Source: Takakia lepidozioides
Taxonomy: Eukaryota; Plantae; Bryophyta
Direction of reading: 5' to 3'
Length of the DNA stretch: 64,000 nt
NCBI GenBank assembly: GCA_030704615.1
Contig: CM060734.1
Location: 43,152,001-43,216,000 of the forward strand
Shown here: positions 2,508 through 39,563 of the stretch, piece by piece
Layout of the letters: the number at the start of each line of letters is the position of its first letter
How positions within the stretch are numbered: position 1 is the stretch's first letter
The notes under the pieces: model-generated
Databases searched by the model: none
Told to the model about the DNA's origin: nothing
What the model saw: the letters and a program-made list of their open reading frames with translations, nothing else
Translations under genes and position numbers: made by a program

Positions 2508-4301
2508 ATGACATCACGCATTTCAACTGCGCACCATTCTCTCGCAATTTTCAACGGAACCTCCTCTTCCCCCCGTTCGGCCAGGAAAAGAAGCCAGTTT
2601 TTTCGTGGAGACTGTAGACAATTTTCAGCACAATTTGTAAAGAATGGAACCGCAGCAGTCCAGAGGAGAAGGGGGAAGGTGGTTTGTGGGCTAGGAGATT
2701 TTGTTGGAGGAGATTTGTTGGGATTGGACCTCGGCAAGTGGGTTTCCGATGTAGAGACGTATGGCTGCATAGCTGTGTATCCTCCTCCTGAGGGAGGATA
2801 TGAAGGGCGATATGCAACCCGGCTGAAGATGGAAGGATACCATTTCATGAATATTAGTGCGAGAGGATTGGGTGATCCCGAGGCCTATCTTACGAAAGTC
2901 CATGGCGTCCGGCCGGTATGTGTCTTGTCACAGTGAGAATCTGTAACGTGATCTGACATTAATTTTGTCCAGCGCATGCAGGCAAAACATCAGCGTAATC
3001 TTCCTTTGTTCTATCATAATAGTGAAGTCTTCTCTCTGTGCTGGAGATTGATTTTCGACGTCTTCACCCGTGAAATGTTTGCTTGTACCTCTCACACCCC
3101 GGTCACGTCACCCAACCCCTTCTGATAAGAAATTATAAATTTCTCTGTCTAGCTGCTTTCTTGAGAATGGATGCAGCATTACATCTTGGAGTCCTGTGCA
3201 TGTGGAACTGAATGAATTTTTCTAGGGTATGTACTTTTTCAGTGAGAAGGTTTCCTACAAACCATTTCACAAACTCTACTTTTGTGCTGAAAGCAGTAAC
3301 AGATGTGAGTTCCAGAGAGACTTGGGAGAAGTAAGAGAGGATTTGATAGTCACAGATGGGCTTACGAGAGAAAATAAGAGAAGTGGTTGCAATAATGCAG
3401 CCTCATCTTGGGAAGCAAGCTATCGTGCGCTGGTACTTTCCCCCTCAAGTTGACTACAGGCTCTCTCTGCTGCCCAAAAACTCAAAGGGCCTTGTTCTTT
3501 GGGTCCTTGAAGCAAAGGTATTATGCATCACACTAGCTTCTTCTGTTGGCAGGTGGGGTTACTGTGAATTCATTTGCATCAGTTGGATTATTCCCCACTG
3601 CTTTGCTGTTATTTGTAGGTTTCTACAGCAGCATGAAACCTGACTACTTCAGATTTGTGAAATTTGTTCTATGACCATTTGACTTACAAAGCGAGACTGT
3701 CACATGGTAGCAGGTGTTATCAAAGACAGAGCTGCAGTATTTGGCATTGTTGCCAGCCTATCGCCCAGATGTGAAGGTGATTGCAGAGTGTGGCTCCTGG
3801 TATGACCTTGCCGCCTATATAGGCCTCTCTCTTGCTACTTCATTGAAACACGTCCTTGCCTTAAGTGTCTCCTAACATGTAGGCCCTTATGTACAAGAGG
3901 TACTAGAGCGTGGTGACTTTAGACCTTCTCATTTGCAAGAAGTGGCATAACTCTCCCATAACCCTCAGCCAGTCCCCTTTACAAGACTGAACTATTTTTG
4001 TATGTAGTCAATAAAATTGAACCCCCTCTCTCTTCTTTTCACTATGGCATTTTTAGGGCAAGGTTCTCACAGTAGCACAGCCTGCCAGCGCACCATGTAG
4101 TTGGCCACTCCAGTCAATTACAAAATGCACAATTGTGTGTGTTGCAGGCGATCATTCAGATGGAAGCCATTGAAGGAGGTGGCAGGGCTCCCAATGACAA
4201 GTGAGACCAAGGCTGTCAAGGCACCCCCTGTACCAGAGAGGCCCAAGGTTGTCTCAGAAGAAAAGAAAGAGAAGGAAAGTCCAGTTGCTGTAGGCTCATG
4301 A
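2508..4301 (+). CDS. ndhN: NAD(P)H-quinone oxidoreductase subunit N, chloroplastic; exons 2508-2915, 3401-3517, 3714-3799, 4148-4301
   Basis: Spliced translation: transit peptide, then GGDLLGLDLGKW..YPPPEGGYEGRYATRL..ARGLGDPEAYLTKVHGVRP|PHLGKQAIVRWYFPP..GLVLWVLEAK|VLSKTELQYLALLP..KVIAECGSW|RSFRWKPLKEVAG. All introns are GT-AG with consistent phase. ATG 2508 is inferred (ATG 2493 is an in-frame alternative). Confidence 0.95.
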
Positions 4302-5801
4302 GAATAGTAGTTCATTAACCATTGGTAGCAGAATTGCTACTTTTCTTTATCCTTTGTCATTTCTCCCCCTTTCCTCTGTCGCTGCCTCACTGTATGTAAG
4401 AGGCACCTCGCATTCTTCAATTTTGAAGTGAAGGATTGATGCATTGCTAGATCTAGCGTCTAGAGGTTGTATCATACATAATGACTGCCACAGTCATTTG
4501 TATAGTGTACCCAAATAGTGCAACTTCTGTACCATGGAGTTTTACTCAACATGGTTCTATTTCCCAAAGTCTTCAGTATAATGGCCATTTTTTTCAGCGC
4601 TGGTGGATTCTGGCTGTCACTTTGTTGGGCCTTGTTCCTGGGCTTTGGACAACCTGGTCAAGTTTGCATTTTCTTCTACCGCCGTAGATTATCCTGGCTG
4701 CAGGAGGGAGAATCTCATCAGGTGTTGAGAGCCGTACTCTAAGTGTCACAATACAAGAGAGCACCCTTGACTGGCACCATGGTCAAATACAAGGCATTGT
4801 ATTACTTGCAAGACGGAGGATCTGTTCCCATCATAGCGCTTCTGGTTGAAGTTGAGGTTATGAGTTGGTCACTGGGGCGTTCACCTGCACAATCAAGACA
4901 ATATTATTCACTCTAGTAAATAAGGGTGTACCTTCATGCGGCACGAGGCCACTCTCTAGCTTGCATAAGCCTTGGGCCATAAAATTTATAAAGCCATGAA
5001 CAGAATGCCTCTCTAAAGGCCTGTCAAGAAGATCACCAAGAGAAAATTTACTGAGCTGCAGCCTTACCAACGCTCTCATGAGGTGAAGAACTGTGATTAT
5101 ATCTCAGCTACTCTCAGATCATCCGGTAGGGTCAAGTAAGGGTCCGATATACAGGGACATTTTGGGAACCTTGGGGAACAAGAGAACATGCGAGAGGATG
5201 AGCTAGTGGGTGAGGTTTTCTCTTTGGATCTCCCTTCCTTGCAAGCCTACGTGCTCGAGTGGGTCCAAGCACTAAGTTAGCGGATGGACTATTTGAACCT
5301 TTTCGGGCTTGATGGAGGAGTTTTCTACTGGAACACATTTCATGGGCAGGACATATTTGCAAGGATAATTTTTTTTTTGGATTGGTGTGCATCATTTTCG
5401 GTGTCCGTCATGTTTCTTGTTGGAAATTTCTTGAAGGAGCTTCAATGGATCCGCTCCAAGATTAGTTCTTCTTGCTGCAAGACTGTCGTCACTAAGAGAG
5501 GACGGCATCGAGAGAGAAAAGAGAGTGATCGAATATGTTGGGTTTGAGTATGTGTGTGTGTGAACAATTGTAGAACAGCGTGCATGCGGAAATGATTTTC
5601 AAGGCCCTCCAGCCGGAGGTGGGTACGTGGGTACACCAAATGCCTGGGAGATTTCCATCATTAAATACCAGTGCCAGTTTCAAACAGGCAATCAACAAAT
5701 CTATATTCCGAACCCTAAATTGTGCGTGGCTGTGGTTGTGCTTTGTGAGAATATTGAGGCTGGAGGCCTGAATTCAGGCGAATGCTACAAGAATTCGGAC
5801 T

Positions 5802-6875
5802 GTGACAATGTCCGAAGAGTTGGATCCAGATCGGTGGGGCACGCTGCCCGATGAATTGAGGGAGAGGGTATTTGCTTGGTTGCCGCCCGACAGTTTCTGC
5901 AGATTCCGATGTGTGCATAAGAACTGGGACGAAATGTTACTTTCCCAGACTTTTATGGATGCCTACTCTCGGGCTTGTGAAGCTCGAGACCCATGGGTTC
6001 TCCTGGAATTGTACAGGCCATTCGAAAGTCCTCAACCGCAGATATGGTTTTACAATCCCGTTTCTGAAAGATGGTACAGGCACCCCTTCTCATTTCTCCC
6101 CACACCAGGAGCTGAAGTTCTAGCCACAGATGGCGGGCTGGTATGCTGTCAGACAGAGTCAGGCATCTATGTATGCAATCCATTGACGGGCTGCTGGGCA
6201 GAGATTTTCCCGATGTACGTCTTCAATTTATATTCAGACTCTGTGGCCTTAACTGTGGATTGTACCACCAAGGCTTACAAGGTGATCTTAGTTGGGCTTC
6301 AGGTAGAGATCGACACCTATGAAGTTCATATCTTTGACTCAGCAACCCAAACTTGGGAGAGGGGTGCGAGGGCACCATATGGCTATAAAGTAACAGATCT
6401 GGTTGTCACAAATGGACATCTTTACTGCGTAACCATCAACTGGGATGTGGTTGCTTACAATTTGGAAAGAAGAGAGTGGTCAAGGATCGAAGTGCCTGAT
6501 GACATGAGACCTTGTCTGACAGTTTATCAGGGTTGCCTGCTTATGGGCAATGCATTCATTTCAGATGAGGGTCTCTTCTCCAATATAGTGGTCTTTGAGG
6601 TGGAGCTTCAGCGAAGGCAGGTGAGGCAGGTGGCAGCAATGCCTGAGGAGTTTCTGCAGGTTATCAATGATCATGAAGGTCATGACAACTATGGGATCGA
6701 ATTTCTTGAGGGTAACACAATTTGCATCCGACTAGACACAAACAATCAGCGACTTTTGATGTACAAAGCAGCCAAAAGTTTGTGGCAATGGTTGCCAGAA
6801 TGCCCAGCCGAAGGCTGCTCAGACATGATTGAGCCTTGTTATTTCTTCAAGCCCCTGCTCGATGCCTCTGTCTAG
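5802..6875 (+). CDS. Intronless F-box protein with C-terminal beta-propeller (FBA/kelch-like) domain
   Basis: 357-aa ORF with F-box WGTLPDELRERVFAWLPPDSFCRFRCVHKNW, followed by ATDGGLVC..YVCNPLTGCW..YKVILVG..VHIFDSATQTW, typical of plant F-box proteins. Confidence 0.92.
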   Translation: MTMSEELDPDRWGTLPDELRERVFAWLPPDSFCRFRCVHKNWDEMLLSQTFMDAYSRACEARDPWVLLELYRPFESPQPQIWFYNPVSERWYRHPFSFLPTPGAEVLATDGGLVCCQTESGIYVCNPLTGCWAEIFPMYVFNLYSDSVALTVDCTTKAYKVILVGLQVEIDTYEVHIFDSATQTWERGARAPYGYKVTDLVVTNGHLYCVTINWDVVAYNLERREWSRIEVPDDMRPCLTVYQGCLLMGNAFISDEGLFSNIVVFEVELQRRQVRQVAAMPEEFLQVINDHEGHDNYGIEFLEGNTICIRLDTNNQRLLMYKAAKSLWQWLPECPAEGCSDMIEPCYFFKPLLDASV

Positions 6876-7904
6876 AGCTTACAATTTCAATCAACCATCC
6901 TCCTGCTAAGCATCACTGGAAAAATGACAAACTCAAGAATCCAGTGCAAATGCTGTTGATGCCAGTAGTGATGCCATATGTACAGCTGATCTTTAGAACA
7001 ACAGTGTATTTCAAACATTGTGAGGAGAATTATTCAGCAAATCCTTTCTAAGAGCCATAAACCAATTTCCCCTCACTTCACCTTTGGCTATGCTCCCATT
7101 AATGTGCAAAAAGAATAGAAGGCCAAAGTGCATGTGAGAGAGAGAGAATGTACTCATAAGACATTTTTACCCATATCCCTTGTGGCCATAGACCTCACGC
7201 CCAGTTTGTATAGAACAAGAGGGAATAGACACTGCCTTTGTAAGGGGCTCACTCCAGTAGGGGGGTTTACCTTGATGTAAAGAATCCATTCAGGCTTTCC
7301 AGATTCCCTTTACATACAAGCATCAATCTGATGTGTGTGAGCTGCCCAATTAGACCCCAACAGGGCCAGGGCTTTAGGCTCAGCCTCAAGTTTTTCAAAA
7401 GTTGGTGAACACAGGTCCAAGGACTATGTTCTAGATGGTCCTGAAGAGGGTCAACTTCAGACCACCTGCACATCAGGCATTGGCAACCTCCCTTCCGCAG
7501 GCACTTGGCTGAAGGCAAACTCAACAGCCCGATTTCAGAGTTATCTATTTTAGTTTTATAGCCATGTGTTACCATAGAAATGACATAGACGGGAAAAGGC
7601 ATCTTCCCGTCTTTCTGGGTTGTGTGCAGTGAGTTCTTGAGAGAAAGGTTATCATGTTTGTGTGAGACCCAAAGAGCCCAAAGGATTGAAAAAAGAGAGT
7701 GGCACAGGAATTGCTCTAGGAATCGATTCTCAATGTGTCAGACATCAGAGAATCTCACCGTGATTAAACCAACCCTCTTCCATCCCTGAATTGACATGCC
7801 ATACACACAAATACTGTGCAGATAGACGGACCCACTCACCTCAAATGTAATTCCGAAGGGGCCTATTGATGAAATTGGAGATTTGGCATCAGGGTACTTC
7901 TGAA

Positions 7905-8175
7905 CTGATCTGCAAGAACAGACCCCATCTTGGAAATGGATCATGTACAACAACTTCTCGCCCTGTAATTTTTTAGATAACCTTCGAGGCGATATGGAGT
8001 CATGCTTTAGGTCCCCAGCCCAAAGCAGTAGCCAGCTTCTCACTGTGGTGTCGAAGAGAAATTTCCTTGTGCTTTCCTCTGCATCGTGCAGTGTCAAGAA
8101 CATATTCAGCCTCCTTCATTTGCACATGCAATCTCTTTAGCTCCGCCTGGATTTCCTCAATTTGTGTCATCTACA
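7905..8175 (-). pseudogene. Decayed E+/DYW cytidine-deaminase domain of a PLS-class PPR RNA-editing factor
   Basis: Minus strand reads EEIQAELKRLHVQMKEAEYVLDT..KEISLRHHSEKLATALG..(D-H)IASKVI*KITGREVVVHD/HFQDGVCSCR. The HSEKLA and HF.DG.CSC motifs are present, with stops, frameshifts and deletion of the KNLRVC segment. Confidence 0.8.
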
Positions 8176-10625
8176 ACTAATAGTGAAGGTCCTACCCTGG
8201 CCGCCAGTCTCATGGTCACCAGATACTTGCACCTGATTCACCCTGCTGACCCCAAACACCAGGGTGAAACTTTTGTTCAACAAATCTAGACACTTGCAGA
8301 AAATCCTCACGAAAAATTAGTAAACCTCGTTCAGGAACCAATCCCTGAAGACAGTCGCACCAGCAGCCAACCCACAGTTGTGGCAGGAAAAGTGGTGTTA
8401 TCATAATCCCTTTGAAGAGGAAGGCAATTCGTCAATTGTCAAGGACCTCTTGCTGATTTCCTCTGCTGATAAACATTTCGAGAGGATTTTATTGTAACTT
8501 TGCATACACTTTGACAGAACTTATGAGTTCAGGAAAGTTTGGGAAGTGAAGTAATCATGACTGTGCAGTTTTAGTTTGTACACTTCCCTTTTCTTCCATC
8601 CAAGAAATGTCGGGAAGGGTGTATGTGGCCACACAGAAAGTATGTTACATCTCCCCTCCTTCGGACCCTTTTGACCTCTTGCAAAAGCAATGAGATTCAT
8701 CCGCAAAAAAAGAAGAGGAAGTTCAACAGAGCAATCGTGGTTACAGCTCTATGCAGATAGAGAGTGAATCACTTTCTTTACAGAGCTGTAATCTTGAATT
8801 GTTTGTGTTAAACTTCCTCTCTTTCTTTGCAGACATAATCACTTTCTCCCTCTCTTTACAGCACTGTAACCTTGTATGCTCTGCAAATTGCTGACAGACT
8901 TCTCACTGAATTTTGACAAAATCACAGTGATGTAAGTCGCATTTAACATCATCCACCGAGACCTATTGTACTCCGGGCTTGAAGGTCCATGCTGAATACC
9001 ACAATGGTACCATCACCAGATTGTGCTCCACCCCGTGTCATAGCTGCTTGCACCCATTGGTGTCTGACTGACTCTCAATCCATCGGGCCTTTTTTCCTCT
9101 CTTGTCTTCAAAGTCTTGACATTTAGAATTTCTGTGTGAAAAACATTATGGCAAACCCACCCAAGCTCCCAAGCATTCAAAACACAGGACACAACTTCGA
9201 AACACTCAACTTCAAAAGTCTTTGCGATTACAACCTTTGATCCAACAATACAAACAACTGTGGAATGCATGAAACCCAGAGAAAACATCATAATCATCAT
9301 AAATCGATGCAACTAACTACAGTAGTCCAAATCTACATGCATCATGATACCAGCTTCTGAAGGAACAAACTCACAGGTTCAGGGAAGATATTTTGCATAA
9401 CTTCATTGTCAGCAGACAATTTCCTGCCATCAGATGACTTTGGATCCCCTTCAACCTCACAGCCCATAGGATGCATGCATTTCTTAGTCTCACAATATCA
9501 AACCTGTGGTCCCTCCAGTCCACAGTGATCGGTCTGACATGAACTCCTGCCAAATCTCTTCTCTGCTCGTTGCTGAGCTTTTCTCCAAGTCGACCTTTTA
9601 ACCGCCCATAACATCACTCCAATGACTCTCTCTCTCCCTCTCCCTCTTCCCCACTCCTTTTGTATGAGGGTGAAATCTTCAAATTAAACCTAGTCAAATC
9701 CTTGTAATTTTATTCATAGTAAATAGCTTCTAGATTCTCTAAAGAGTAGAAAACATTAGACAGTAAATCCTAACCGTTCATATGGCCATGTGGCAGGTGA
9801 GAAAGATATCCAGAAACTCCAGCTTGAAAAAGCCCTAATTCTCATCCGCACGTGCCAAACTGTAGGGAGGTGTTAGTGGGGAAGGGAGTGGTTTTATTAG
9901 TCCCGTTAACTCGCAGACTGATCAGCTTCAATCGTGTTCGATCTTCTACTCTTGTGTCGGAATTTGGAGTGAAGGGTTTGTCTTTTGTTTTGTATTTGTA
10001 CTGAAGAGATTGAATCATCTTCGTTGCGCTCTCGAGGTGTGTGTTGGGAGCTGGAGTCTCTCCCATTTGCTTTCCTTCCTTTTTCTGAAAGACCCAAAGT
10101 CTTAATTCCAGTAGCGGGGAGGTATGGAAGAAGCAGGACATGCAAGCACTGCGCGCTGGGCGATATATGACCGCCTCAAGAATCTCCCCATTCTTTACTC
10201 AACCAATGACTCCGGCATTTCCCCAGCACGGACCTTTAAGTGTACTCCTTTTCCCTGCTTGTTTGAAAGCTCACTGTATACTGAGTGTTTCGCCCTCTGA
10301 CCTGCGTTCCTTCTTTCGTTGGTTCCGTGAGTGGATGGTTAGTGACTGTTTTAGGCCGGGCCGGAATATTTTTGGCTTTTGCCCGCAATTTTTTATGTTC
10401 TTTTGGTGGTTTAAGTATTTTAACTGAGTAGATTAGGTTTGTGTTAAGGTTTCGCGCAACTTGCCCTTGAACCTCCAGCTATGGCTTTGAATTAATTGCC
10501 GGAAAATTCACGTCTTACAATGAAGATGCTGTCTGAGGATGTGGGTGGGTCAGTTTGCGAAGATCAGCCTCTGTCGAAGTAGCTTTTCCTGCGTTCACTT
10601 GTCTGACCAATTGTTAGCGAAATCA

Positions 10626-13600
10626 ATGTCGTCACATAGTTGTGGTGATTTGATTACAGTGGAAACAACAAAGAGCTTGGTGGAGAAGGAAGTGCAGACG
10701 GAGGTTGATGATCCGCCTGATCCAGAGGTCTCTCTCTCTCTGTGGCTGTTATACAGTTTCTTTCTTTCTTTCTTCTCTCATCCCTTGGGTCTTCTTTTTT
10801 GCGCTGACCAGCTCTGTGACAGACATGTCCAGGTATAGTAGAGCTAAGCCCTGTAAAGCGAAGTCCTGAACTGGATCATTCCTTGATGATTAAATAGACA
10901 CATGACTAATTGCTTTTCTGCTCCAGCATCGACTTAGGGAAATCAAGAAGATTTCACATGACCTCCATGTGTCCTCTCTCTTTGGATTTTACAGGAGCAC
11001 AAATGGGAGATGCTCTCACAGTACTCGAGCATTCCTCGCAACGAATTCGTGCAGAGAGAGTGGGTGTTTCTTGTATTGGACTTCTAGGCTCATTCTCCAT
11101 ATCGTGGTAGATGTGCATTAAATCTTTGGAATGGGTGATGCCTTGCTTATGCATCAGATTTGCATATTTCTAATGATTCCCATTGAGCAGATGCCACCGT
11201 TCCCTTCGGCCCCCGGAATAGAACCCTTCCTGGTTGGTTGCCAATCTCAGTATGGAACTGAACTGCCATCACTCTCTCATCGTCAATGGTGTCCTGTTTG
11301 CAAGATACAGGTCCACAATGACTGGTCAAACTCAATTTCAACATTGAGTGTGAGTGGTGCAACCACTAATACAATACTTCCTGATATTACACCAATGATA
11401 TTGATTGGAACTGATAACACCACCATTGTACGGAAGAAAGGAATAGAGTTCGCTGAAAGCCTGTAAGCCCAGGGTGGCAAAGGAAGGTTTAGAATGAGAT
11501 TTCGAAAACGAGATACCCCTAAATACAAGCAGACTCAGTAAGTTCCTTCCCAGCAGTACTTTGATGGAGTGCCTCTGTGAGAACCTGGTTTGGATATGGG
11601 TTCCACTTTGAAATGGTTATATTGCCCCAACCCAAAGAGACAGAAGTTGATGGTGACATCCTGTGACAATGTTTGGTGAGATTGTAATTCTTCTGGAGGT
11701 TGTTTGCTTACTCTTGGGGGGGAGAGAGGGACACAGAAATTCATCATGTCCACAAGAGGTCTTCTAGTGTAGTTTGATCTGGGTCTTGACAATTCTTCCC
11801 TAGAAAGTTAAGATAAGATAGACACAATATGGTGATCTCAAGACCATATAATTGCATGCTGTTCTGTGATGTGGTGGCACATCTGAACCGAAATCTCTGA
11901 TACAGAGTACATCGATGACTTCTCCCTTCTGAGCTTTCAAACAGGGCCTATCTGCATTGTGTTCCTCATCTCTCACAACCTATTGACTCTTGGCCTTGGC
12001 TTGATTGGCCTGCTGCATGAAGGCATGTGACTCAGAAGGAGGATGACATAGCAGTGTGTAACTGCAAATGCGAGGAGGGTCACCCAGAGAGTGTGTGTGG
12101 AGAACGCTGTTTGAATCTGTTGACCAGTACAGAATGTACACCTGGACATTGCCCCTGTGGTGCTCTGTGCAAAAACCAGGTAGGTTTTAAACTGGTCCCT
12201 AAGTAGCCCCATCCTGGCTAGTTCGGCCAAGGTAACTTATGATCAGCCAGAAAGGTAGTGCTTTAGTTTGGAGGTGAGTCTGGTGTTATCGTCCATCACC
12301 ACAGGTGTAGATACATGGTAATATTTTCGGAGTCCAAGAACCATAAGAGAAGCACTGCAAGTGCAGTCAGTGTGTCAGATTTTCATCCATTCCGGTTTTG
12401 AAGCTCCGTTGTGTGCAGCGTTTTCAACGCTGTGAGTGTGCGAAGGTGAAGCTGGTGAGGACTGCTTCACGAGGCTGGGGTCTCTTGGCAGACCAGGACA
12501 TCAAGGTTTGGACAACATCACTCTTCACCCCTCCAGTCTTGACCCACCTGGGCTTTCTGTCTCTCTATCTTATGTCACATTCTTCTCTCCCAGCTGTCTA
12601 TCTCTCCCACCTCTTGCTTGGCACTTCCCTTGAAGCAGTTACCGTGTCGTATCTTGGTAAACATGACACAAAGTCTTAGACTGAAAGTGATGGGGTTGGA
12701 GAGTGGAGGGAAGTAGGAAGGGGAGTTTGTGATGGAGTACTGCGGGGAGGTGATATCTGACAAAGTGGCGCAATCACGCGTCCATGTTTATGAGGCGGCA
12801 GGTTAGACAACATTGCCTGCTCCAATGATTTGATTTCTCTCTTACTCTCTCAAGCGCAATGAAATTTTGTTTTCTGCAGGTAGAGCATGTCTTGACAGTA
12901 GTCCTGGGTTCAAACCCACTTGTGACCTTGTTAGAGACTATGGCATGTAGTCCCTTGTCATATTGTCAAGGGCTGTCAGCTCTTGAAGTGAAAGAATTGT
13001 GCACAGTTTGCCCAGTCACTGTCCAAGACACCGTAAAGAGGTGCCCACCACTGGACAAGCCTAAGGTGTACAGGGAGCTCGTGTCACTGTTTTGAAGCTA
13101 AAGGGACTTGGATGCATGAGTAGGACTGTGGATGTGTCCCAGTCCACTTGTTTGTATTGCATGGATGCAAACATGTGCATGAAGGTGAAAGAAAGCGTTT
13201 ATATGCCAGGTGTCAAGGACAAGTACATTATAGCCTTGGATGGGTCAGAGTTCATTGATGCCACCAGGAAAGGCAGCCTTGCTCGCTTCATCAATCATTC
13301 GTGGTGAGTAGTTTCTGACCTCCATTTTAACAACGGTGGAGTACTCGAGATGCATTGAAAAACTGGAGGATACTTGAAATATATCAGAGTTGTTTACTAA
13401 ATTTCGTTCGATACACTGTTACTGCCTTCTTAGCCTCAGAGGCTACATCTTGGAATTTGTTCAGGTATCGTCCACGAAAAGTACATGCATCTTGTTAGAA
13501 TAATTTTGATTGGTTAGTTTTATACATAGATATCCAAATGTGAGTCAGCCTTGGAATTGTTGTGTATGTAACACAACTTATTTGTTTCTATTGATTCTGA

Positions 13601-26777: not shown

Positions 26778-28199
26778 GAGGAGGGCGGGAATCTTCATCA
26801 TCACAGGTGGCTTACCAGGAATAGTAAAAAGAAAAAAAGAAAAACAACTTCATTAAACAAAGAGAAATTAAATTAAATTAAACTGAGAGAAAGAAACAAT
26901 GTTTGTGTGCCACAAAGATATCCATCCAGCAACAAGCCACATATCAAATGAGGACATGCGTCAGCTATCATACTCGGCCCGTTTGGTGTCTCTCTTGTGG
27001 GCTGCCCCCCTCCCAAAAGCAATAAAAGACCATTCTAAGATCTATTACATGATTAATTTGCAAGTTCTTTGGCAGGATATGAGAATGAAACACTATTTTA
27101 ACTAATTCTGGACTTTTGTTTGGTCCAGAAATAATATGAGAAATATGAATAAACAAAATTTATTATTGAAAAAATAATATATATGATTATTTTGGTTATT
27201 TTATATACAATATAATCCTCCAAACATTTTTTGGAGACAATATAAGTATGTATTGTGGTTTTAGAAGAACATCCACTGCCAAGTTGACGTTCACGAAAAA
27301 ATTGGGATGATGCAATAAATTACATCATGATGTGAGGTTAGATATGTAAAACTTTTTGCAGAATATGGTTGCCATATCAGATGACATACAAAACCAAACA
27401 TAGAACAATCATGGCATGTGATGAAGATGATGATATGAAAGAATGTGTCCGCATACATTGATGATAAACATTCATATTTTATTAGAGATTGCAACTTTGG
27501 CGTTGCAGTCAGACCTAATGTAACATCAACTGTACATCCGTTGGACTTAATGTTATCCAGCGGCTCGAAGCCATACAACGGCTTACACTAACCCATTAAT
27601 ATTACAAAGCCTCCTCCCAAACAGCTCGCAGTCAAGGCATGTGTTGGAAGACGCCTCCGGTTACCACAACCACTTGCAACGGTCTCCGCACCAGATGAAA
27701 CAGAAATACTTTCGGAGAACTCGAACCTAGTAGTAACATTATCATCCAAAATGTTACTTGGAACTCTACTTGTTGAATCTCTTGATGCCCTTGAAGCCTG
27801 TCGGGAAGCCCGCCAGCCAATCACGAAGCTCTTCTTCTTCTTTTCGAATTCGCTCCTTGAATGTGACTGGGCAAAACAATTTTTCATATGACAAATGTCA
27901 GCTGAAATGTGGAACATTTGTAGAAAAAATGATAAAGTGCAAGTGCAAGTGGAAGACACTTTCAAGATCAAATTCTCTATAAACAATAAACAGTGGGATA
28001 AGTACATACCAAGGTAATCGGGTTCCTTTTGTTGTGGGATCCAAATACGAGGATCAACATATCTTCCATACCAAGCCCAATAGGCATGGTCACGACCAAT
28101 AGACTTACGAGAACACTTGGCAGGGTTCTCGCTGATGTAATCTACGACTGTTGAAGCTGCAGTCATTTTCAATATATATGGCCACACAGCTTTTGTGCA

Positions 28200-28905
28200 A
28201 AAGCACATTGAAAGCCTGGACATATCCCCGAATGTCGTATGTTTGCTTCAAATTCCTCATCTTGTCCCGGGCAAGCCAGGACGCGTTGAGGGGCACAAAC
28301 TGTCTCTTCATCAATTCCTTGAACCCACTCCAGTTCAAGGTTTCCGGGCTTGGACCTCGGTCGTGAAGGCGTTTCTGCCACCATTGTTGAGCATAGCCCC
28401 TCAAATAGGTGGGAGCCACTTCCACCCGATCCTTGTCATTCAACTTGGCCGCCCGGAAGTACTGCTCTAGCTCCAAGAGCCAGGTGTTGAGTGCCTTCCG
28501 ATTTCGGACGCCCTCGAAGATGCTGGGTTCCTTAGGCTTCACCTTAAACTTTGCCTTAGTGGAAGTAGCATTAGCCGCCTTCAACACGTCTTTCAACGTC
28601 CTGCCAAACTGCGCCAACAACCCTTCCCAAAAAGCTGCCGGCATGGGAGACATCTATTGGTCTGTCGGAGCTCTCAGGGATTCCTCGGGCTCCGACTCCT
28701 CGGATTCCTCCCGCTCATGAGCGGCCTCGTTTTCAGAAACCTGCGTCGCTTCCTCAAACGGCCGCTTCGGTGACACGTCGCCCCCATCGGGCTCACCAGG
28801 TTCATCATCTTTTGGGCCGTTCCGCTTTCGCTTTGGCTTGCCAACCCCATGATGAGGCCAATCCCAAGGACGATCACGTACTGAACTCTAAGCTCTGATA
28901 CCAAG
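28200..28905 (-). mobile_element. gag: Ty3/gypsy internal region: tRNA-iMet PBS (28892-28903) and truncated gag; pol and 3' LTR missing
   Basis: TGGTATCAGAGC lies 2 nt after the LTR. Gag reads KPKEPSIFEG..WLLELEQYF..TYLRGYAQQWW..WSGFKELMKRQF..ARDKMRNLKQT..YVQAFN, and similarity stops at ~28200. Confidence 0.9.
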
Positions 28906-29621: not shown

Positions 29622-30179
29622 CAGAGGGTAACATTATGTCCATTGTCAACGGAAATACTGACCTCATGCCCCGGGGGGTGCACTCCAGCCAATATGTATC
29701 AGCCACGTGCGTGCACAAGAGGGGGTATTTTAAACCCCTCCATGTACAACATTATAAATATAGAGGGGGTTTTATATCACCTTAAATATAATCTTACAGG
29801 AGGGGATTACTAAGTTTTAGGAGTAGTCTAGTGGTAAGGGCATAGAATGATGTGTGACACATCGCGGGATCAAATCGCGATGCAATGTTTTTTGCTTTTC
29901 TTTTTTTCTTTTCCCCGCGATCTGTCTCCCGCGGGCTCTCTTTTCCCTCCTCCCCCGCACCCCTTCCGTGTCAGCATGGTCTTAGCATTCCATGAGCTTT
30001 CTTTCTTGTTTCTTTTTTCCTCTTATCCCATAAGATCTTTGAGCTTCCTGCAGCCATTGTGAAGTACAATCGCATTCTACCAAGATTTGGCGTTTGCGGA
30101 ATAGTGGCACCCTTCCATGGCCTAAGGCCTGGCTCCGGAGGCTGAGACAGAAGCTTAAGTTCATCTTGTGGCTCCTGAG

Positions 30180-31860
30180 AAACCTGGTCGCTATCTCTCA
30201 TTGGCGTCTGGTAGCACCTGCTGGTCCTAAGTTTGGTCATCGGGTTTGGGTTTTGATTCAGGTATGTCCAAACTGATTGTTTTTTTCGTTCTGTTCCTCT
30301 GCGCCTCTCCACCTATCCTCAGCCTCGAGACTTTCAAAGTTGGTAAACAGGGGTATAGGCACAATTCCCTTGATAGAATTGAAGAGAGCGTCTCTTTGGT
30401 GAGAGAACCCCGGACAGTGTATCAGAAAACGAATACTGTCTTCAGGTTGCCCACACAACGGACAATTGCACTCTCCCTTTCCTCTCTGCTTTTGTTTGCT
30501 GTTCAAAGGTAGGCTTCCTTCCCTCAGTTTAAATTTCAGTCTAGTGCCGAGAGTGGGTAGACCCTTGAGGTCATCCAAGATGTCCACCCCCATGTCACTG
30601 ACTGGAACAAGTTCAGGGAAGTTCTCTACCTAACTTCATTTTCATCAGACAATCTCATGGCAACAGACATGGCTTCAGACACTACAGCCTCTAAGTCAGA
30701 TTTATCCAGCAGGGTCAAGACTTGCGGATCCAGGTCAAGGTCCTTGAGAATCTTTTCTACTCTCTTCTGCCAGGACTTCGCCTGTTTGACAGGGTTTAGG
30801 GTTTCCAAGATATAGAGTCGATTAACTTAGGATATCTGGTGTTGGGCATATGTTGCAGCTGACCCCACCATCTGACCTTGATTTCATCTCGTCGGGAGCT
30901 TAATGATGGAATGCCAAACTCACCCCGAACAGCCACATTGGCTGTTTTGGAGCATGCTGACATACACTCCTTAAGCGCCCCACTTGAATGGATTCTAGAG
31001 ACTTAGCCTGGTTGGAGTTATCAACCCATATAGCAGATCCGTACTCCAAGGCAGGTCTAATAACGCGAGAAAGCATGGTTTTCTTAACCTCAGAGTTGAC
31101 CCCTGTGCAGTGGAAAATTTAGTGAGCCCCAGAGCTTTGCCCATTTGGTGAGAGAACCCCAGACAGTGTATCAGAAAATGAATATTGTCTCCAGATTGCC
31201 CACACAATGGGCAGTGCACTCCCCCTTTCCTCTCTGCTTCTGTTTGTTGTTCAAAGGTAAGCTTCCTGCCCTGAGTTTATATTTCAGTCTAGTGTCGAGA
31301 GTGGGTGGACCCTTGAGGTCATCCAAGATGTCCACCCCCATGTCACTGACTGGAACAAGTTCAGGGAAGTTCTCTACCTAACTTCATTTTCATCAGACAA
31401 TCTCATGGCAACAGACATGGCTTCAGACACTACAGCCTCTAAGTCAGATTTATCCAGCAGGGTCAAGACTTGCGGATCCAGGTCAAGGTCCTTGAGAATC
31501 TTTTCTACTCTGGTGTTGGGAAAACACCTTTTGATCTCAGTCCAAACCAGGAAGTGGTCAGAGGTACCAATATCAGTTCTGTCGATCATCGAAGAGAAAC
31601 ACTCGGGGAACAAATTTTTGTCCATTATGATATAGTCCACAATGGAACGTTCCCATTTTGGGATTTCTCACGAGTCCACTACACTTGGTCACCTCTTGTC
31701 TTGTTATTCAAGGTCAAAAGCTGAAGCTCTTCCAGACAGTTAATTAACCGTCTGCCATTAGAATTCAGCTCGTCCTCACCAGAAGACCCAATGATATCGT
31801 CCTGATGGAGCCCTTTGCCCACTTGCGCATTGAAGTCACCTTGCAATAGCACCACAAACA
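30180..31860 (-). mobile_element. Rearranged LINE ORF2 fragments nested in the P-like element (endonuclease, RT remnant, duplicated C-terminal CCHC region)
   Basis: APE endonuclease motifs GDFNAQVG, NSNGRRL, DYII and SDH (31510-31860); RT remnant RKPCFLALLDL (~31060-31090); AVRGEFG..VRWWGQL (~30860-30950); CPLCG..EDSIRFLIHC at ~30400-30470 and ~31150-31220. Confidence 0.85.
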
Positions 31861-32659
31861 TGAAGAGAAACTTTGGAATCTGACACTTTTCTGCCCCCAG
31901 TCAATGGTGGGACAATGTGGGTGGATGGTCAACTGGAAACTGCAACGGCAACAGCGCAATTGATAGAGCAAGGCATTGCTGATGAAGGTACCTTCTTCAA
32001 CACATTTCAGCCTGAGGGCACCTTCTGGTTAGACCTGTTTCAGCCTGTTTTTCCTCTCATCCTCCTCAGCCCTAAAGCATATGTATTGAATTCTGTAAGT
32101 TAGCTCGTGGGTGGATTTGCGGTGCGTTGGAGTGACTTTGCAAGTTTAGGGCCGAGGTGGCAGCATGACAGGGAGGGGTAGCTGTTGATGCAGGGAGAGG
32201 ATCGCGGGTGCAAAATCATCCAAGAGGGCCAGATTTGGAGCAAGGAACAGCGCTGGCAGGAGTTCTATAAATATGATCCACAACGGTGGGACAATATTGT
32301 CAACAAGGTGAACTTTCTTCATGCAATCGTAGGGAGTTTGACAGAACTTGTATTTAAATATGTTAGTGTGGAGGGAGGGGTAGCCGCTGATGCAAGGATG
32401 GACTGTGGGTTCAGGATCACCCAAGAGGGCTACCAGCAGTGGAAGTAGCAGCATTTGGTCAATAGCAGCAGCAAGAATTAGCAACGTCAAACTCATCAAT
32501 CAGGTACTTGCTTCTGTATACATTTTATCATCTTATCAACGTAGTCCCTGCTTGGACAGCCTATAGGGTTGTATAAAACAGGACTTTGGAACCTTCCAAC
32601 CCGGGTGCTTTGTTATTGGTCTATCAAGGTCTGATTTGAAATGTTTTCATTGCATTTTG

Positions 32660-35600
32660 CAGTGTGAACTCATCATGGAAGAAGAGTTGGAAGTAAAAGT
32701 CCTGCTCGTTGGAGGAGATGCATCACCAAATAGGCTTGGTTCTGTGTTCACTATGCAAGGTGTCACATACAAATGCATCCGAGCAGAAATTATAGGTGAT
32801 GAGCTTGTCTCAGCAAAATTTCATTTCATTTCCATGGGGGGTAGTGTCCTTTCAGCCAAGCAAGAAGAGAGGATGGTTCTGAAAGGGGATACTGTACACA
32901 TTAAGATTTCAGAAAACGATGGGGACCAAGGATTGAAAAGACCTCTATCTTCCAGTGGTTCTACGATCTTGCATGAGGACAGACCAGGCAAGGACCCGGC
33001 ACCAGTGTCTACCAAGATGAGGATGGACCCTGATACACCCTTTGCTGGCGATGGTGGAAATGAAGACCATGCACATGAGCATGCACTTCAGCAGAGATCT
33101 GGTAGATTGTGCAGCACGTTGGCTACATCCAACGATATTCAAAAATGGCAGAAAGAGATTAGAGCCGTTGAAAGGAAAATCTCTGCAGAAGGACGATGTG
33201 ACAAGTTTGAGCTGATGACAAAGGATCAAGAAGGACAAGCAATGTTCCACATATGGTGTGTTGAGTGTGAGGATGTTTATGCACGGTCTGGGAAAAGCAA
33301 ACCATATGATGCATGTGCAAACTTTATGAGATCTCATTTGAGAGTGAGGGGCATCGCATAGCCTATGAGAGGCGTCATGGGAAGGGTTCATCACAATGTG
33401 TCATCAGCCCTGTAAATGCAGATGAAGCATTAGACGCAAAGAAGAACAGGGTGAAGGAGGCATTAGAGGAAGTCGCTCGGTTTTGTGAGGACAATCCTGG
33501 AAACAGATTTGAGATTGTGGAAGCCACAATTGGAGACTATTCGTAGTTGGGTTCCATAAGGATTAGGTGCCACTTGATTCGAAGTGGCTACTCTTGTTTC
33601 CAAGGACAGGTTCTTTGCAATCTTCTTTGACAGAGCATGTGAAAGGAAAAACTCATGTCGATGCAGAGATTTGCCAGAAGGTTGAAAGTAGTGAAGGACC
33701 TTGCAAAAAGAGAGGAAGGCCTCCAAAGCCTATGATTGCCAAAGATGTAAAGCAACCGGATCTAAGCTCTTTCTTGGTCAGTCAAACCTGTGTTGCCGTC
33801 CCCACCACTTGACAATCCAATGTGGCATCAAAATGGGAGCATCCTCGTCACAAACTCCATACGCTTTGTTGACGCTGCCCAACGGGGAGATCTGATCGAG
33901 GATTGACAATTACAGCAAAGGTCCCAATGCAACAAAGGAAGAGACAGTTTGTGTTGGGGCCTATGGGATGAATGGTGGGAGTACAACCAGAAGAGAATAA
34001 GTCTGAAACCATTCCTTCAAGATAGCAAGGGAGGAAAGAAGTGGTATGTCGAGCCGTTGACAAATGCAACCATCACTCTAAACAATCAAGAGCATAAGGG
34101 TTGGTACGTTTGGCACGCGGATTGTTTTAGAGTGTCATTGGATGGGGAGCCATTTCCAAACTTGAGATGTTCAGCATGTTCTTCCATTCCCTTGGAAAAT
34201 GACTTCAGAATGAGGGTATATAGAGAAAGAGGTGCATGGAATGTGAGGGGAGAGAGATACTGGCAAGGGAAGAAGGTTGTCATATCTTGGAAATGCGAGA
34301 TTGTCAAACAGTTTACAAAAACAGACAGGAGTTGAGGCAGTTGAGGTTCAAATTGTGGGAGGCCAGGACCAAAGTGGCATCCTTGTCTGTGCGATGTAGG
34401 AGTTTGAAGGAGTCTGGGATTGAGGCAATTGAAAGAGGAGATGTTCTCAAATTTTGTCGTGATATTGTTGATGCACATAGGAGGGGGATTTTGAAGGAAA
34501 AGAAAGTTTGTGGGATTTCTTGTTGATATGGGCAAGAATATTGACAGGTCTCCACAAGGGAAGAGGTATGGTACTAGCACAAAAACAATGTTTGAGACTG
34601 TGCAGCTTTGGGGGGGTCCGAGATTGCATCATTTTTTGGCTTCAAATGTGGGGGGTCCTTTATTGATACTACAAGACGGTCTTTGAGGAAAGGTTTGAAG
34701 TATAGAGCGGGAGAAACGGATGATATATTTCAGCATGTGGCTGGAATTTACAGAGATGTGATGGAAGATGCAAATATTCCATTAGGAAGCATCCCAGTGA
34801 TGGTGGCCGAAGATGAAACTGTTGTGAAACGATTGGTACGTTGGATTGCTAGGGATGACACCCTTCTCGGTTTTGTGGGCTTCAAGACAACCATGTATGT
34901 ATTTCAAATTTTGTGGTGCAAGTGGGAGAAGGGGAATCAGGGTACAAACATATTGTGGAGGCATTCAAAAACAATGTGGTTGCCCATTATGCTAGAGTGT
35001 TGATAGCAAATCCTCTACATGTACGGTTAACTCGATTGGTATTGGTAATCCAGCTCACTTGCAATAGATTTGACAACAATTTTGTGAGATCACAATGGGA
35101 AGTGGTGAGACAATTGTGGGACAAATATGTGAGGGACGTGGTTGGGCCTATAATTGGGCATGCTTCAGACGGAGAAGATTATGCCAATGGGGCTGAAAGT
35201 AGATTTTGCATCCCTTGGGAAGGATGGTTGTTTACAGGTCGAGTGTGCAACGGGGGATATATACGGACTCCATGATCAGGACTTCATCCACAATGGGAAA
35301 AATTTGGTAAATCCCTTGGACAGTGCATCACGGACTTTGTGTTGGGTGATGAGGTTGCTACATTGAATCATGTGTTATTGGTCTACCATTCATTTTCAGT
35401 GGACAAGCATGGACTTCGGGAATGTGATATCAAAAGAGAAGATCGACAGAATTGGCAGCAGCTCAACGACTGGCATCTCGGAAGGTGCAAGCTTGTTTGA
35501 GGGAGTTACAATCAACTGTGAATCATCGAAGAGAGAGGACCAAAGGTACTGAAATTTACCTATACATCATTTCATGCTACATCGACATTTTTTTGTCTCC

Positions 35601-37031
35601 TCACATGTCATTGTGTGAGAGGGTACAATCTGCTGCGAAGGTATCATTTTTTTCAGATTGTGGAAGTTGTGGCTATTCCACCACGAGGTGTATAATCTGA
35701 AATCCTTCTTCATTAGCAGGGAAGCATACTTGGATTTACAAATTTCATGCCACTACGTGGTTTTACTTATCAAATTGTTCAAGGATAAGTTTAATCATGT
35801 GCAAGTTCCTTTGAGCCTTGTTGGTTCAGATGTGTGTGAAATATTCTTCAGCAAAGTGGGAGGTATGTTACGGAATGAGAGGACATATGACGGGTGTGAT
35901 TTGATTGAGAATGCGGGAGCATTAACACGCATATCCGAGTTCGAGGCGAATCCAAAAGGACCCAAGTTCTCAAGAGCTCACAAGAAAACAAGAACACATA
36001 TGGTCTTCTTTGGAGAAGAAGCCAGGTATCCCCCTTGCTGATTTGTCCGACTTTTCTACTGTCCAATCGGATGATTGCATTGTGGAGGCTTTGAAAACTG
36101 GATTTCTAGAAGCGCAACTTTTATGCCATAAACTTGGGATGAAACCAAACAAAGCAACAAACTTGGATTGGTGGAATGAGCCATGGACAATTGAGAGACA
36201 AATGGAGGCGAGCTATTCAAAAGCATGGAAGAGGAGGGTGATGATGTCGATGCCATAGATTCTATTTGTCCTCTTAATGCAGACACACATATTCAAAATG
36301 AGGTCGTGGAAGATGAATTGGTGTGCGGGCCTTCGAATTCAATGGAGGATGTTTGAGCCAACCTTTGGATGATCATGCAGAAGAGGTACTTGTTCAAAGT
36401 GAATTGAGACATACTCTGGATGCTGTCATTGATGAGTTTGAACAAGAGAAAGATGGATCGAAGGCAGTGGTTCCATTTGTCAAAGTAGACGGAAGACCAT
36501 ATTCAAAAACACTTTGGTTAGCCAACTCAATGGCAACCCTACTCTATCCAAGGATAGACACGAGTAAGAAGTGCATCGATGTTGTTTTGCCGAGAAAACA
36601 AACCAACTACCAACAACAAAGCCACGAGCTTGGGATTGGGTTCGGATTGTGCTGTATTTTTGTTGATGGGGGACTGCGATCCAAATTACAAACAGGAAAG
36701 GTAGACCAGGGAAAACCTGCAGAGGAGCAACCAAAGGCACTTGGTATTTGGGCAGGGGGTTCAAAGAATGCGGAAGAAAATCAATAAGCGGTTTGTAGAA
36801 TGTAGGGATTCTGTTGATTTATTGGAGCGTCCTTCTCATATGGAGATTGGGTTAGCATGGTACCAAAAAATTCGAGGAGGGGTCTATACGTACGATTTGA
36901 CGGATAACATGATGGTTGATTTGGATTCCATTATCGCGTTAGCATGTTTAAAGTACAATGTCAAGTCAAACACATATGTTCTTGATGCAAATGACCGAAA
37001 AGTATTTGACAACTTTATCAAAGATAAATAA
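32660..37031 (+). pseudogene. Multiply frameshifted P-element-type transposase with N-terminal zinc fingers and a C-terminal BAH-like domain
   Basis: Ordered motifs: AEDET (~34810), GHASDG (~35160), DQDFIHNGKNLVN (~35275; DxxH..K..N), DRQN.AAAQRL (~35445), GSDVCEIFFSKVGG (~35825). N-terminal WCVEC..FMRSH and EHVKGKTH zinc-finger-like segments. Confidence 0.75.
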
Positions 37032-37332
37032 TTTTTTTAATTAATTTGTTAGATTTTATTATGTTTTAAATGAATAAATTCGATATAATATAAAAACATA
37101 CATATATATTGGAGGGTTATTTTTAATGATGAAAAATGAGAATATACATACAGAAGGGGGTACTTTCCAAAAATTGTAAATTTTTGTATATTTACAGGAG
37201 GGGATTTTATAATCTTCAAAAAGTATGTACAGAGGGGGTATAAATTATCCAAGGACCCGTATACAGGGGGTTTTTTTATTAGGCGACGAACGCACGTGAT
37301 ACGCACAGTTTATAAAGAGTGCACCCCCCGGG

Positions 37333-39563
37333 CCTCATGCCCCATAAGACAAGATGCATTGGGGAGGGAAGAAATGATACTTTGAGAGTCTTACCACCTA
37401 AAATGAACTGGATGCGAATACAAGACGAGTCCAACGAGGTATGAAATCTCCATTCTTCAATTTCTTTCCTGGAAGATTTTTCTGATTCAATGTGGATGAT
37501 CCTCCCTTCGATTTTGACTCTTTCGACTGTGGTTCCAGCTTCATGAACCTCCACTGTCCAGTGGACGTTCCTATCCTGACCCTGCCTTATTGTAACAGAC
37601 CAACAGACTTTTCGGGTTGGAAGGAGTCTCGCAGTCGGCTGTTAGCCGCATCCGGAGTCGGATTTTTCCTAACGTGGAGGTTCGTAAAACTGGGAGTACA
37701 TTGGCGAAGTGCACGGAGTGTGAGATGTTCAAGGACCTGATCAGAAAGTCTGTCAAGAGAAGTGCGGAACAGGTGACATACAAACGAGCGCTTGATAAAC
37801 ATTTGAGGCACCAAGAGTCGTGCAGAAGACTGTACCATAGCTGGAGGAATGAGTCTGTTATGATTCCGGAGGAGTTTCTCTGTATTATTCACGACAAAAT
37901 GGATCATAAGAAAATAGCTGTTCCAAGGCTACAGACTCCAAATAAGATGATTTCTGGATTGGGTCAGCTTCCAGTTTCACTAACGGGAATGGTCACGCAC
38001 GGACACGGTGGTGGAGCTTACGGTCAGTATTCTCTTGAGTTCTGGAAGGGAAATTCAAACTTTACAATTGGTTCTTTGGCACGTTGCCTGCGCCAGCTGA
38101 AGAAGCCAACCTGTCGCGAGTCCAGGAACATTTTCGATTACCGACTTCAAAACGAGTTCTTCGAATCACTTTTAAGAGGTAAATCGAGATGTTTGGATGC
38201 TCTTAAACCCTGCAGGCCGGAAGACAAACATGGTGCTCGTCCACTTCCGAGAAGACTGTACTTGCGAATGGACAACTTTGCGAAGGACAATAAGAACAGA
38301 TGGATGCTTGCTTTTCTATCCCTCCTGACCGCCAAAGATGTTTTTGAAGAAATCCAGCTAGGGTTCCTAATGGTCGGACACACCCATAAGGACATCGACG
38401 GGTTCTTCAGCTACCTTTCGAAGAAGCTGAAGGAACGAAGCACCTACATTCTTTCGGATTTGATGAGGTCTTTTATGACCTCGCAAGATCTGCATTTCAT
38501 TCCACAGATTATTCAGGAGATTCTCGACTTCAAGAATTTTGTTAAGGGCTGTATTCTGGATGGAAAGGAGGCGTTGGTCGCGATTTCGGAGATGCACGTC
38601 TTCCGTTTTTTTAAGGATGCGGAGGGCTGGCCCGTCATGAAGTACAAGAAGTCCGCTACTGATTCGGATTGGCTTCCAATAAACAATAGCGTGAAGATGT
38701 GGAAGTCCAATCCTGACGGGACTCTGAAGCTCCTTGAAGGAGACCCAGACGCCGTTCCAAGGAGACCTATCTGGGGCGTCGGGGACGACTCCTCTGAAAA
38801 ACAGTCATTCATTAAGAATGGAATAAAAAAATACAGGGATTTTTGGACGAAAGGAATGATGCTTGACGATCATTACAGAGGTCGAATGGAACAATACGAC
38901 CAGTACTGGGGAAAGATTCTCGCCAAGCTGGATAAGCCAATTCCAGAAGCTCCCGACCGTATTCAGCTTCTTGAGGGATTTTGGCCGAAAACAATTTGGT
39001 CCAAGAATCATCACAAAGATGGAATCCATCCACATATATTGCCAGATGTGGAAGAAGAGGATGAAATCCTAGAACCTTATTGTGGCTCGAGGTGTGAGCG
39101 ACCAAGAATATCCCTGAATCCGTTCAAGGATATTGAGAAAGGGTTTTTTGTGCTCGTTCGCCCTTATGACCCAAGTACGTGCCCGGTCTGGATAGGGGTG
39201 GCAATATCTGACGTGATCCGCGAAAAGGAGGATCCTAATTTTAAGAAGGTGAAGGTGGAGTGGTGGAGACAGAGAAAAGGTGGTAACCCAATAGACTTGG
39301 AAAGGTACAGGGACTATTGGTCAAAACTTTGGGAGTATAACTCGTCAGATCCTTCTCAATGGATCCATGTGAACAATGTTGTGTGGACAATGCCTCCACG
39401 AAAAAATACGACAAGGAATAGCACTAAGAGAATTACTGCCGCCGAAGCAGTGAAGGCGCGCGCTAATTTGGAGGAGGCTAATTGTCAATCAGAAAACGAG
39501 TCGTGCGAGCGAGTTCCAGACCAAGGACATATTGTTGAGCTCAACTCCAGTACTTCGATTTAA
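37333..39563 (+). mobile_element. Sola-like (DDD-type) transposase gene, 5' part disrupted; exon piece 29622-29669 joins 37341-37438, intron 37439-37598, last exon 37599-39563
   Basis: 648-aa open frame with KCTEC..HLRH, IIHDKMD, LYLRMDNFAKDNKN and FLMVGHTHKDIDGFF. Removing the P-like element restores an open frame EGNIMSIVNGNTDLMPHKTRC..LPPKMNW..NE that splices in phase. The superfamily label comes from recalled motif similarity. Confidence 0.75.

Follow-up and report, generated by a model that had tools for sequence, protein, structure and literature searches.

A DNA transposon lies at 29670-37332 of the 64-kb stretch of contig CM060734.1 (assembly GCA_030704615.1) analyzed here, which we call the window throughout. 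It is bounded by terminal inverted repeats (TIRs) with a target-site duplication (TSD) directly outside them, and it holds the decayed remains of a transposase gene. P elements are a textbook animal transposon. In our reading, which we consider very probable, the window carries one complete, non-functional cut-and-paste insertion in a plant host of bryophyte grade, with a transposase that belongs to a deep branch of the P/THAP9 superfamily lacking the THAP domain. The borders of the element are marked as follows.

29662-29669, no strand: left TSD, CCTCATGC, identical to 37333-37340
29670-29685, plus strand: 5' TIR, CCCGGGGGGTGCACTC, complementary at 16 of 16 positions to 37317-37332
29704-29712, plus strand: subterminal motif CACGTGCGT, 35-43 bp from the 5' end
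37290-37298, minus strand: subterminal motif CACGTGCGT, 35-43 bp from the 3' end, the same distance as the 5' copy
37317-37332, minus strand: 3' TIR, read as GAGTGCACCCCCCGGG on the top strand; returned by the repeat finder as 16 nt, 100% complementary to the left arm
37333-37340, no strand: right TSD, CCTCATGC, an exact copy of the left one

A preliminary description of this DNA had reported perfect 16-bp TIRs and an exact 8-bp TSD, and both were recovered at these positions. The termini are of the CCCGGGGGGTGCAC type and start with CCCGGGGGG. With up to three mismatches allowed, the TIR 16-mer occurs only twice in the window, at the two ends of the element, against a chance expectation of 0.26; the ends and the duplication are exact, far beyond chance. 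The TSD can only be 8 bp long, because the TIRs are symmetric. The direct match between the two sides is 3 bases longer than this only because a CCC, with which the TIR opens, by chance also follows the TSD in the right flank. Another placement, in which a palindromic CCCGGG falls outside the TIR, was rejected, as the flanks are then no longer direct repeats. Similarity between the two ends goes on, imperfectly, to about 45 bp from the termini, and the CACGTGCGT motif is a candidate transposase-binding site.

Within these ends, the remnant of the transposase gene can be followed almost motif by motif on the plus strand.

32675-37031, plus strand: transposase remnant, about 1,400 codons, in stop-free pieces in all three frames
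33254-33731, plus strand: two C2H2-like Cys/His patterns and an AT-hook-like KKRGRPPKP, aligned with relatives P0027, P0256, P0215, and P0282
33949-34260, plus strand: Cys-rich domain, LCWG...WYxEP...C...CxxC..IP...FRxR, sitting where P/THAP9 proteins carry THAP
34224-34683, plus strand: coiled-coil-like stretch, then a helix-turn-helix (HTH; GKRYG...LWGGPRLHHFL), matched by profile to the P HTH and by tile 16-69 of the family core hidden Markov model (HMM)
34806-34820, plus strand: AEDET, with the putative first catalytic Asp on strand beta1, aligning to D230 of the Drosophila P transposase
35159-35176, plus strand: HASDGE, with the probable second catalytic Asp, followed by a 9-codon deletion
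35274-35312, plus strand: DQDFIHNGKNLVN, the DxxH signature, with D441, H444, K448, and N451 nearly invariant in 37 relatives
35313-35822, plus strand: insertion domain made of helices only, lying between DxxH and the putative catalytic Glu, counterpart of the GTP-binding insertion of P
35435-35478, plus strand: REDRQNW / AAAQRLAS, located by motif search
35823-35864, plus strand: GSDVCEIFFSKVGG, with the putative catalytic Glu, invariant in 37 relatives and aligning to E531

Homology extends over the whole protein. Fern, liverwort, and metagenome relatives used as tblastn queries covered 33290-37025, and eight stop-free pieces of the window tile positions 16-579 of the family core HMM. Seven frame changes fall in the catalytic core, and they are indels and not introns, because the HMM coordinates are contiguous while the DNA coordinates overlap; about 15 frame changes are counted over the whole gene, including its N-terminal, coiled-coil, and C-terminal parts. 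In addition, stop codons interrupt the frame in at least two places (33544-33546 and 36702-36704), and 27 bp (9 codons) are deleted directly after SDG, beside the putative second catalytic Asp, where relatives read SDGDSRRR (judged against P0027, P0042, and P0188). The gene truly ends at 37031, because its last residues match the C-terminus of the fern relative P0188. The preliminary description had listed the motifs EDET, SDG, DxxHxxKxxxN, DRQN.AAAQRL, and SDxCExFFS in a decayed transposase: all five are present on the plus strand in that order, and the decay is now spelled out by the frame changes, stops, and deletion. This copy is dead and cannot make transposase, and any move that it made after its decay would have been in trans.

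An exhaustive protein search with window positions 35619-36038 as the query returned 316 relatives, 117 of them at E <=1e-10, with Adiantum nelumboides (fern), Riccia sorocarpa (liverwort), and Desmophyllum pertusum (coral) among the named ones. A profile search added Calypogeia fissa (liverwort), Mytilus edulis (mussel), Amphiura filiformis (brittle star), and Clytia hemisphaerica (hydrozoan); these added relatives are annotated as hypothetical proteins, and no P-family Pfam domain is recorded for any of them. Marine invertebrates and metagenomes are the source of most relatives. The closest one shares 69% protein and 65% DNA identity with the window transposase, and its locus was found in five metagenome assemblies (L001-L005, ERZ247944xx), the two longest contigs of which, L001 and L002, are 98% identical. 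The environmental samples presumably contained another bryophyte, to whose DNA this locus would belong. A distant member, P0091 (TARA Oceans contig L008, 4606-7977), has a C-terminal PTM/DIR17-like Tudor domain (E 9.7e-10). We dropped this domain as a candidate family trait when Pfam searches of the C-terminal 180-230 residues of 10 other relatives gave no match.

The fold of the family was examined with an AlphaFold2 (AF2) model of the metagenome relative P0065 (residues 150-720), which reached a pLDDT of 95.5 and a pTM of 0.94. Foldseek placed this model on the Drosophila P transposase (6pe2/6p5a) at E 1e-11 and TM 0.65-0.68; among other transposases, RAG1 and Transib were matched at 1e-3 and Hermes at 2e-2, with a TM of ~0.2. 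VIA-align superposed 416 of 442 residues on chain residues 129-566 of 6p5a with a Z of 26.4, compared with 12.3 for Transib, 10.9 for RAG1, and 8.6 for Hermes, at a sequence identity to the P transposase of ~15%. The model has the EDET Asp on its first strand (114-122) and the SDG Asp right after strand 233-238; DxxH opens the next helix, residues 306-476 are all helices, and the Glu is on helix 477-489. The predicted layout is that of a split RNase H with a helical insertion, as in the P transposase. What is expected of the P superfamily, an HTH and then a DDE core of the RNase H fold that is interrupted by an all-helical insertion, is thus seen in the relative's model, and the window pieces tile the same core HMM. 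The D, D, E set with D(2)H is likewise present, the second Asp being assigned from its place after strand beta4. The EDET Asp, the SDG Asp, and the CE Glu would be the catalytic residues.

Two further approaches point the same way. A profile built from 37 relatives and run against the PDB ranked the Drosophila P transposase 6p5a first (E 0.028), in three colinear stretches. The family HTH falls on the P HTH (chain residues 98-198) and the EDET Asp on D230; a weak middle stretch, which includes S409 and D444, pairs AQRLAS with ATQLFS and YIDIFLS with WFDIFNS; and the last stretch puts the invariant Glu on E531 and the preceding Asp on D528. A language-model search of the ESM Atlas with the window's own piece led to PF21789 clusters. 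Among the fold neighbors in the Atlas, every annotated one carries PF21787, PF21788, PF21789, or PF12017, and a chordate THAP9 cluster is found at TM 0.65. Unannotated basidiomycete clusters are structurally closer (TM 0.92) than any annotated P cluster. The family has the fold of P and is missed by standard domain models, and it is found in ferns, liverworts, and marine animals.

The P transposase is, to our knowledge, the only transposase known to need GTP. Its GTP contacts are D528, K385, K400, V401, S409, F443, D444, and N447 (PMC7776569). In the weak profile alignment, an Asp, a Ser, and an Asp of the window stand at D528, S409, and D444 (in GSDVCE, AQRLAS, and YIDIF), Ile and Leu replace F443 and N447, and K385, K400, and V401 are unplaced. 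The helical GTP-binding insertion of the preliminary description is there as an all-helical insertion, in which only some of the GTP-contact positions can be matched. It is possible that this family uses GTP.

A second element was found on ENA metagenome contig L007, which encodes relative P0061 of the animal-type clade. The gene for P0061 sits within an element that spans 4378-11135 and has the TIR CCCGGGGGGGGCACT and an exact 8-bp TSD, ACTGGGGG. Because this distant relative has nearly the same termini and its own 8-bp TSD, both the end sequences and the 8-bp stagger are traits of the family, kept between clades with ~30% protein identity. The CCC start, which the preliminary description had found unusual in place of CA, is thus real and no oddity of this copy, and the L007 duplication, like that of the window copy, falls in the 7-8 bp range to which other copies had been expected to keep. 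Each element also has a palindromic hexamer near both ends, at much the same distance in the two, GGTACC at 29-36 bp in L007 and CACGTG at 35-40 bp in the window. These hexamers suggest a candidate family-specific subterminal transposase-binding site whose sequence differs between clades. In the Riccia sorocarpa locus (L006), neither a TIR/TSD pair nor any of these terminal motifs was seen, no element ends were found on L001 or L002 (one locus from different samples), and contigs L008-L011 had no matching termini.

Upstream of the HTH, the family departs from P/THAP9. The C2H2-like patterns and the KRGRP AT-hook-like motif are common to the plant-clade proteins, and the Cys-rich domain that follows was detected by its own HMM in 78 family proteins from both clades, with W46, G65, C73, C88, and C91 invariant in 50 sequences. 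The window's own uninterrupted piece with this domain (33907-34332) was modeled by AF2 at a pLDDT of 78.9. Judged from its position, the domain may have a role in DNA binding. No BED domain was matched by Pfam in the window pieces. The C2H2-like fingers of the preliminary description are real, in the window as in plant-clade relatives, and the lack of a recognizable THAP domain that it pointed out is a trait of the family rather than of this copy. THAP may not be a defining trait of the P superfamily outside animals, because it is reported to be restricted to animals and absent from plants (PMC7776569). The region at 32675-33300 (plus strand) holds the first ~200 residues of the plant-type protein (MEEELEVKVLLVGG...), which by eye resemble the N-termini of fern P0027 and liverwort P0042; it gave no Pfam match and no search alignment to relatives. 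It could be an extra domain specific to the plant clade.

Two genes in the window bear on the host. An exon of NdhN, a nuclear gene for the chloroplast NDH complex, lies at 2373-2936 (plus strand), and an F-box/Kelch open reading frame (ORF) with a plant KIB1-4 beta-propeller at 5802-6875 (plus strand). The NdhN exon shares 77-80% identity with the liverwort proteins of Calypogeia and Riccia, 62% with that of the moss Ceratodon, and less with those of vascular plants. Because it is most like bryophyte proteins, the host is a land plant of bryophyte grade, and the land-plant host proposed earlier is confirmed. We also built a maximum-likelihood tree of 116 cores (quick method, LG+G4, no outgroup), into which the window core entered with an X at each frame break. 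The window copy groups with both fern proteins, all four liverwort ones, and 13 unnamed sequences in a 20-row clade (SH-aLRT 99), and every named animal protein belongs to another clade, of 60. The tree fits long residence in land plants rather than recent transfer from animals.

Several results weigh against placing this element in the P superfamily. The preliminary description had suggested a check with the Pfam P models, and this check failed: 14 stop-free window pieces gave no relevant Pfam match, full-length relatives gave no P-family match at threshold, and the gathering scores of Tnp_P_element, TNP-like RNaseH_N, GBD, and RNaseH_C were not reached. In the 37 relatives, all transposase-related matches were below the cut-off, and they were to P families only: PF12017 (Tnp_P_element HTH) in 2 of 37, at best 6.4e-5, and PF21787 (TNP-like_RNaseH_N) in 1 of 37, at 0.0022. 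No THAP domain was matched by Pfam in the window pieces or the relatives, and the model of the Cys-rich domain matched no solved structure in the PDB (best Foldseek E 0.44, best VIA Z 2.1). When three window pieces were compared with PDB sequences by phmmer, only chance matches were returned, and the profile match to 6p5a is marginal in sequence terms at its E of 0.028. The protein that was folded is that of the relative P0065 and not the window's own broken one, and only three of the eight published GTP-contact residues are matched, through a weak alignment. Finally, the PDB matches included neither a Kolobok nor a MuDR structure, so that the fold comparison has no direct bearing on these two types. 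The P identity given in the preliminary description is thus upheld by fold and profile, but not by the Pfam models proposed for it.

The explanation that survives best beside a P-type element is that of a separate, unnamed superfamily, sister to P, that would have its HTH, split RNase H, and helical insertion by ancient descent, together with a DNA-binding domain and termini of its own, and that might not need GTP. It would account for the failure of the Pfam P models on every member tested, the ~15% identity to the P transposase in structural alignment, an N-terminal domain that is not THAP and matches no solved fold, CCCGGG termini, not of the CA type, that are kept across plant- and animal-type clades, and the basidiomycete clusters that lie closer than any annotated P cluster. 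However, the full catalytic region superposes on P far better than on every other transposase, P shares the 8-bp TSD and the DxxH signature, and the sub-threshold Pfam matches are to P families only. We consider such a superfamily unlikely, and, as superfamily borders are a convention, it differs from a P-type element in name more than in mechanism.

A hAT element is very improbable. The hAT superfamily is standard in plants and has an 8-bp TSD, BED-type C2H2 fingers, and a C-terminal S..ER.FS-like motif, and the 8-bp TSD, the upstream C2H2-like fingers, the DxxH, and the ...CE.FFS of the element can all be read as hAT-like. With Ac/Ds and Hermes it also shares the insertion inside the RNase H fold, along with C/DxxH and N-terminal zinc fingers. 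However, neither the window pieces nor the 37 relatives have a hAT, BED, or Dimer_Tnp_hAT Pfam match, the fold match to Hermes (Z 8.6, TM ~0.2) is much weaker than that to the P transposase (Z 26.4), no hAT cluster is found among the Atlas fold neighbors, and the termini are different. The grouping with hAT that the preliminary description had named as evidence against its own assignment was therefore not observed.

An element of the Kolobok or MuDR type is just as improbable. MuDR/MULE elements have TSDs of 9-10 bp and usually long TIRs, as opposed to the 8-bp TSD and 16-bp TIR found here, and there is no MULE/Transposase_mut Pfam match. Kolobok shares the C/DxxH signature, which is common to both types and P, and is presumed to be related to P (PMC9587614), and the PDB matches offer no structure of either type for comparison. 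However, Kolobok has a TTAA 4-bp TSD and 5'-RR...YY-3' termini (PMC9587614), whereas the two elements here have 8-bp TSDs that are not TTAA (CCTCATGC and ACTGGGGG) and CCC...GGG termini, and the Atlas fold neighbors are P families only. Least plausible of all is that the element recently came in horizontally from an animal, or that it is a contaminant of the assembly: most relatives do come from marine invertebrates and metagenomes, but plant genes and plant retrotransposon remnants flank the copy on the same contig, the copy is heavily decayed, and its closest named relatives are a fern and liverworts, in a clade without a named animal sequence.

A P-type element thus remains our preferred reading, and from the HTH on it has the domain order of the P element, THAP9, and zebrafish Pdre, that is, an HTH, an RNase H split by an all-helical insertion, and a C-terminal region (domain order of P, PMC7776569). 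The 8-bp TSD of P and Pdre (PMC7776569), the fold, the EDET Asp and CE Glu on D230 and E531, the DxxH signature, and the coiled-coil-like stretch between the N-terminal DNA-binding region and the HTH are further likenesses. Four differences stand out: a Cys-rich domain in place of THAP, with C2H2-like fingers added in the plant copies; a 16-bp TIR starting with CCCGGGGGG, compared with one of 31 bp starting with CATG in P; Pfam P models that miss the family; and a host range that takes in this bryophyte-grade plant as well as liverworts and a fern.

By analogy with P, an active copy might have worked as follows. The N-terminal DNA-binding region, made up of the Cys-rich domain and, in plant copies, also the C2H2-like fingers and the AT-hook-like motif, would recognize subterminal sites, for which CACGTGCGT, 35-43 bp from each end, is the candidate. 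The coiled coil and the HTH would pair the element ends. The split RNase H, with its Asp in EDET, its Asp in SDG, and its Glu in GSDxCE and the all-helical insertion between them, would then cut at the CCCGGG... termini, and the cut ends would be joined to target DNA with an 8-bp stagger, giving the 8-bp duplication.

The 5' non-coding part of the element and its surroundings hold remnants of other mobile DNA. One feature lies inside the element.

30258-31971, minus strand: LINE-like fragments (endonuclease and C-terminal zinc-knuckle remnants), within the 5' non-coding part of the element

The ORF translations of these fragments show the endonuclease motifs GDFNA and SDH and a C-terminal CxxC...H knuckle, with a weak Exo_endo_phos_2 match (E 0.056). 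They are either a nested insertion or captured DNA. They include a direct repeat of ~370 bp (30395-30763 and 31144-31511, spacing 748 bp, identity 90-97%). To the right, 277 bp from the element, an uninterrupted ORF of 648 amino acids (37617-39563, plus strand) strongly matches DUF7869 (E 1.2e-40); its Atlas neighbors are DUF7869 clusters, mostly from Streptophyta and without an assigned function. This ORF may be part of a further mobile element, which the P-type element would have entered or landed next to. To the left, two overlapping ORFs lie at 27588-28653 (minus strand), and the part at 28105-28653 matches Retrotrans_gag and a Ty3 capsid. The P-type insertion sits in a transposon-rich stretch.

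Our literature search, which did not extend to Repbase and Dfam, found no paper describing this protein family. A 2025 survey of 1007 plant genomes covered 17 superfamilies, with Pfam HMMs for P, and reported recent activity in seven, P not among them (PMC12973397). Because Pfam-based screens cannot see the family, surveys that find no P elements in plants, such as this one, would have missed it. An older database of miniature inverted-repeat transposable elements lists P- and Novosib-type ones in 'lower plants', from TIR/TSD features alone (PMC3964958).

Tentatively, and with somewhat less than even confidence, we propose that the family is an ancient THAP-less P-type lineage. It would have its own Cys-rich DNA-binding domain with an unsolved fold, and its CCCGGGGGG...GCACT termini would have been kept across plant- and animal-type clades of ~30% identity. 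In land plants it would have been inherited vertically since before the split of liverworts and ferns, and in seed plants lost or never fixed.

From a biological perspective, a family with the P fold, present in bryophytes and ferns and with its element ends intact, widens the host range of the P superfamily and exposes a blind spot in Pfam-based plant screens for P. It also shows that a DNA-binding head of another kind can serve the P catalytic module. The near-identical termini of very distant relatives provide a testable handle on how the ends are recognized, and the dead copy described here is of value as a fully bounded reference for the structure of the element in this genome.

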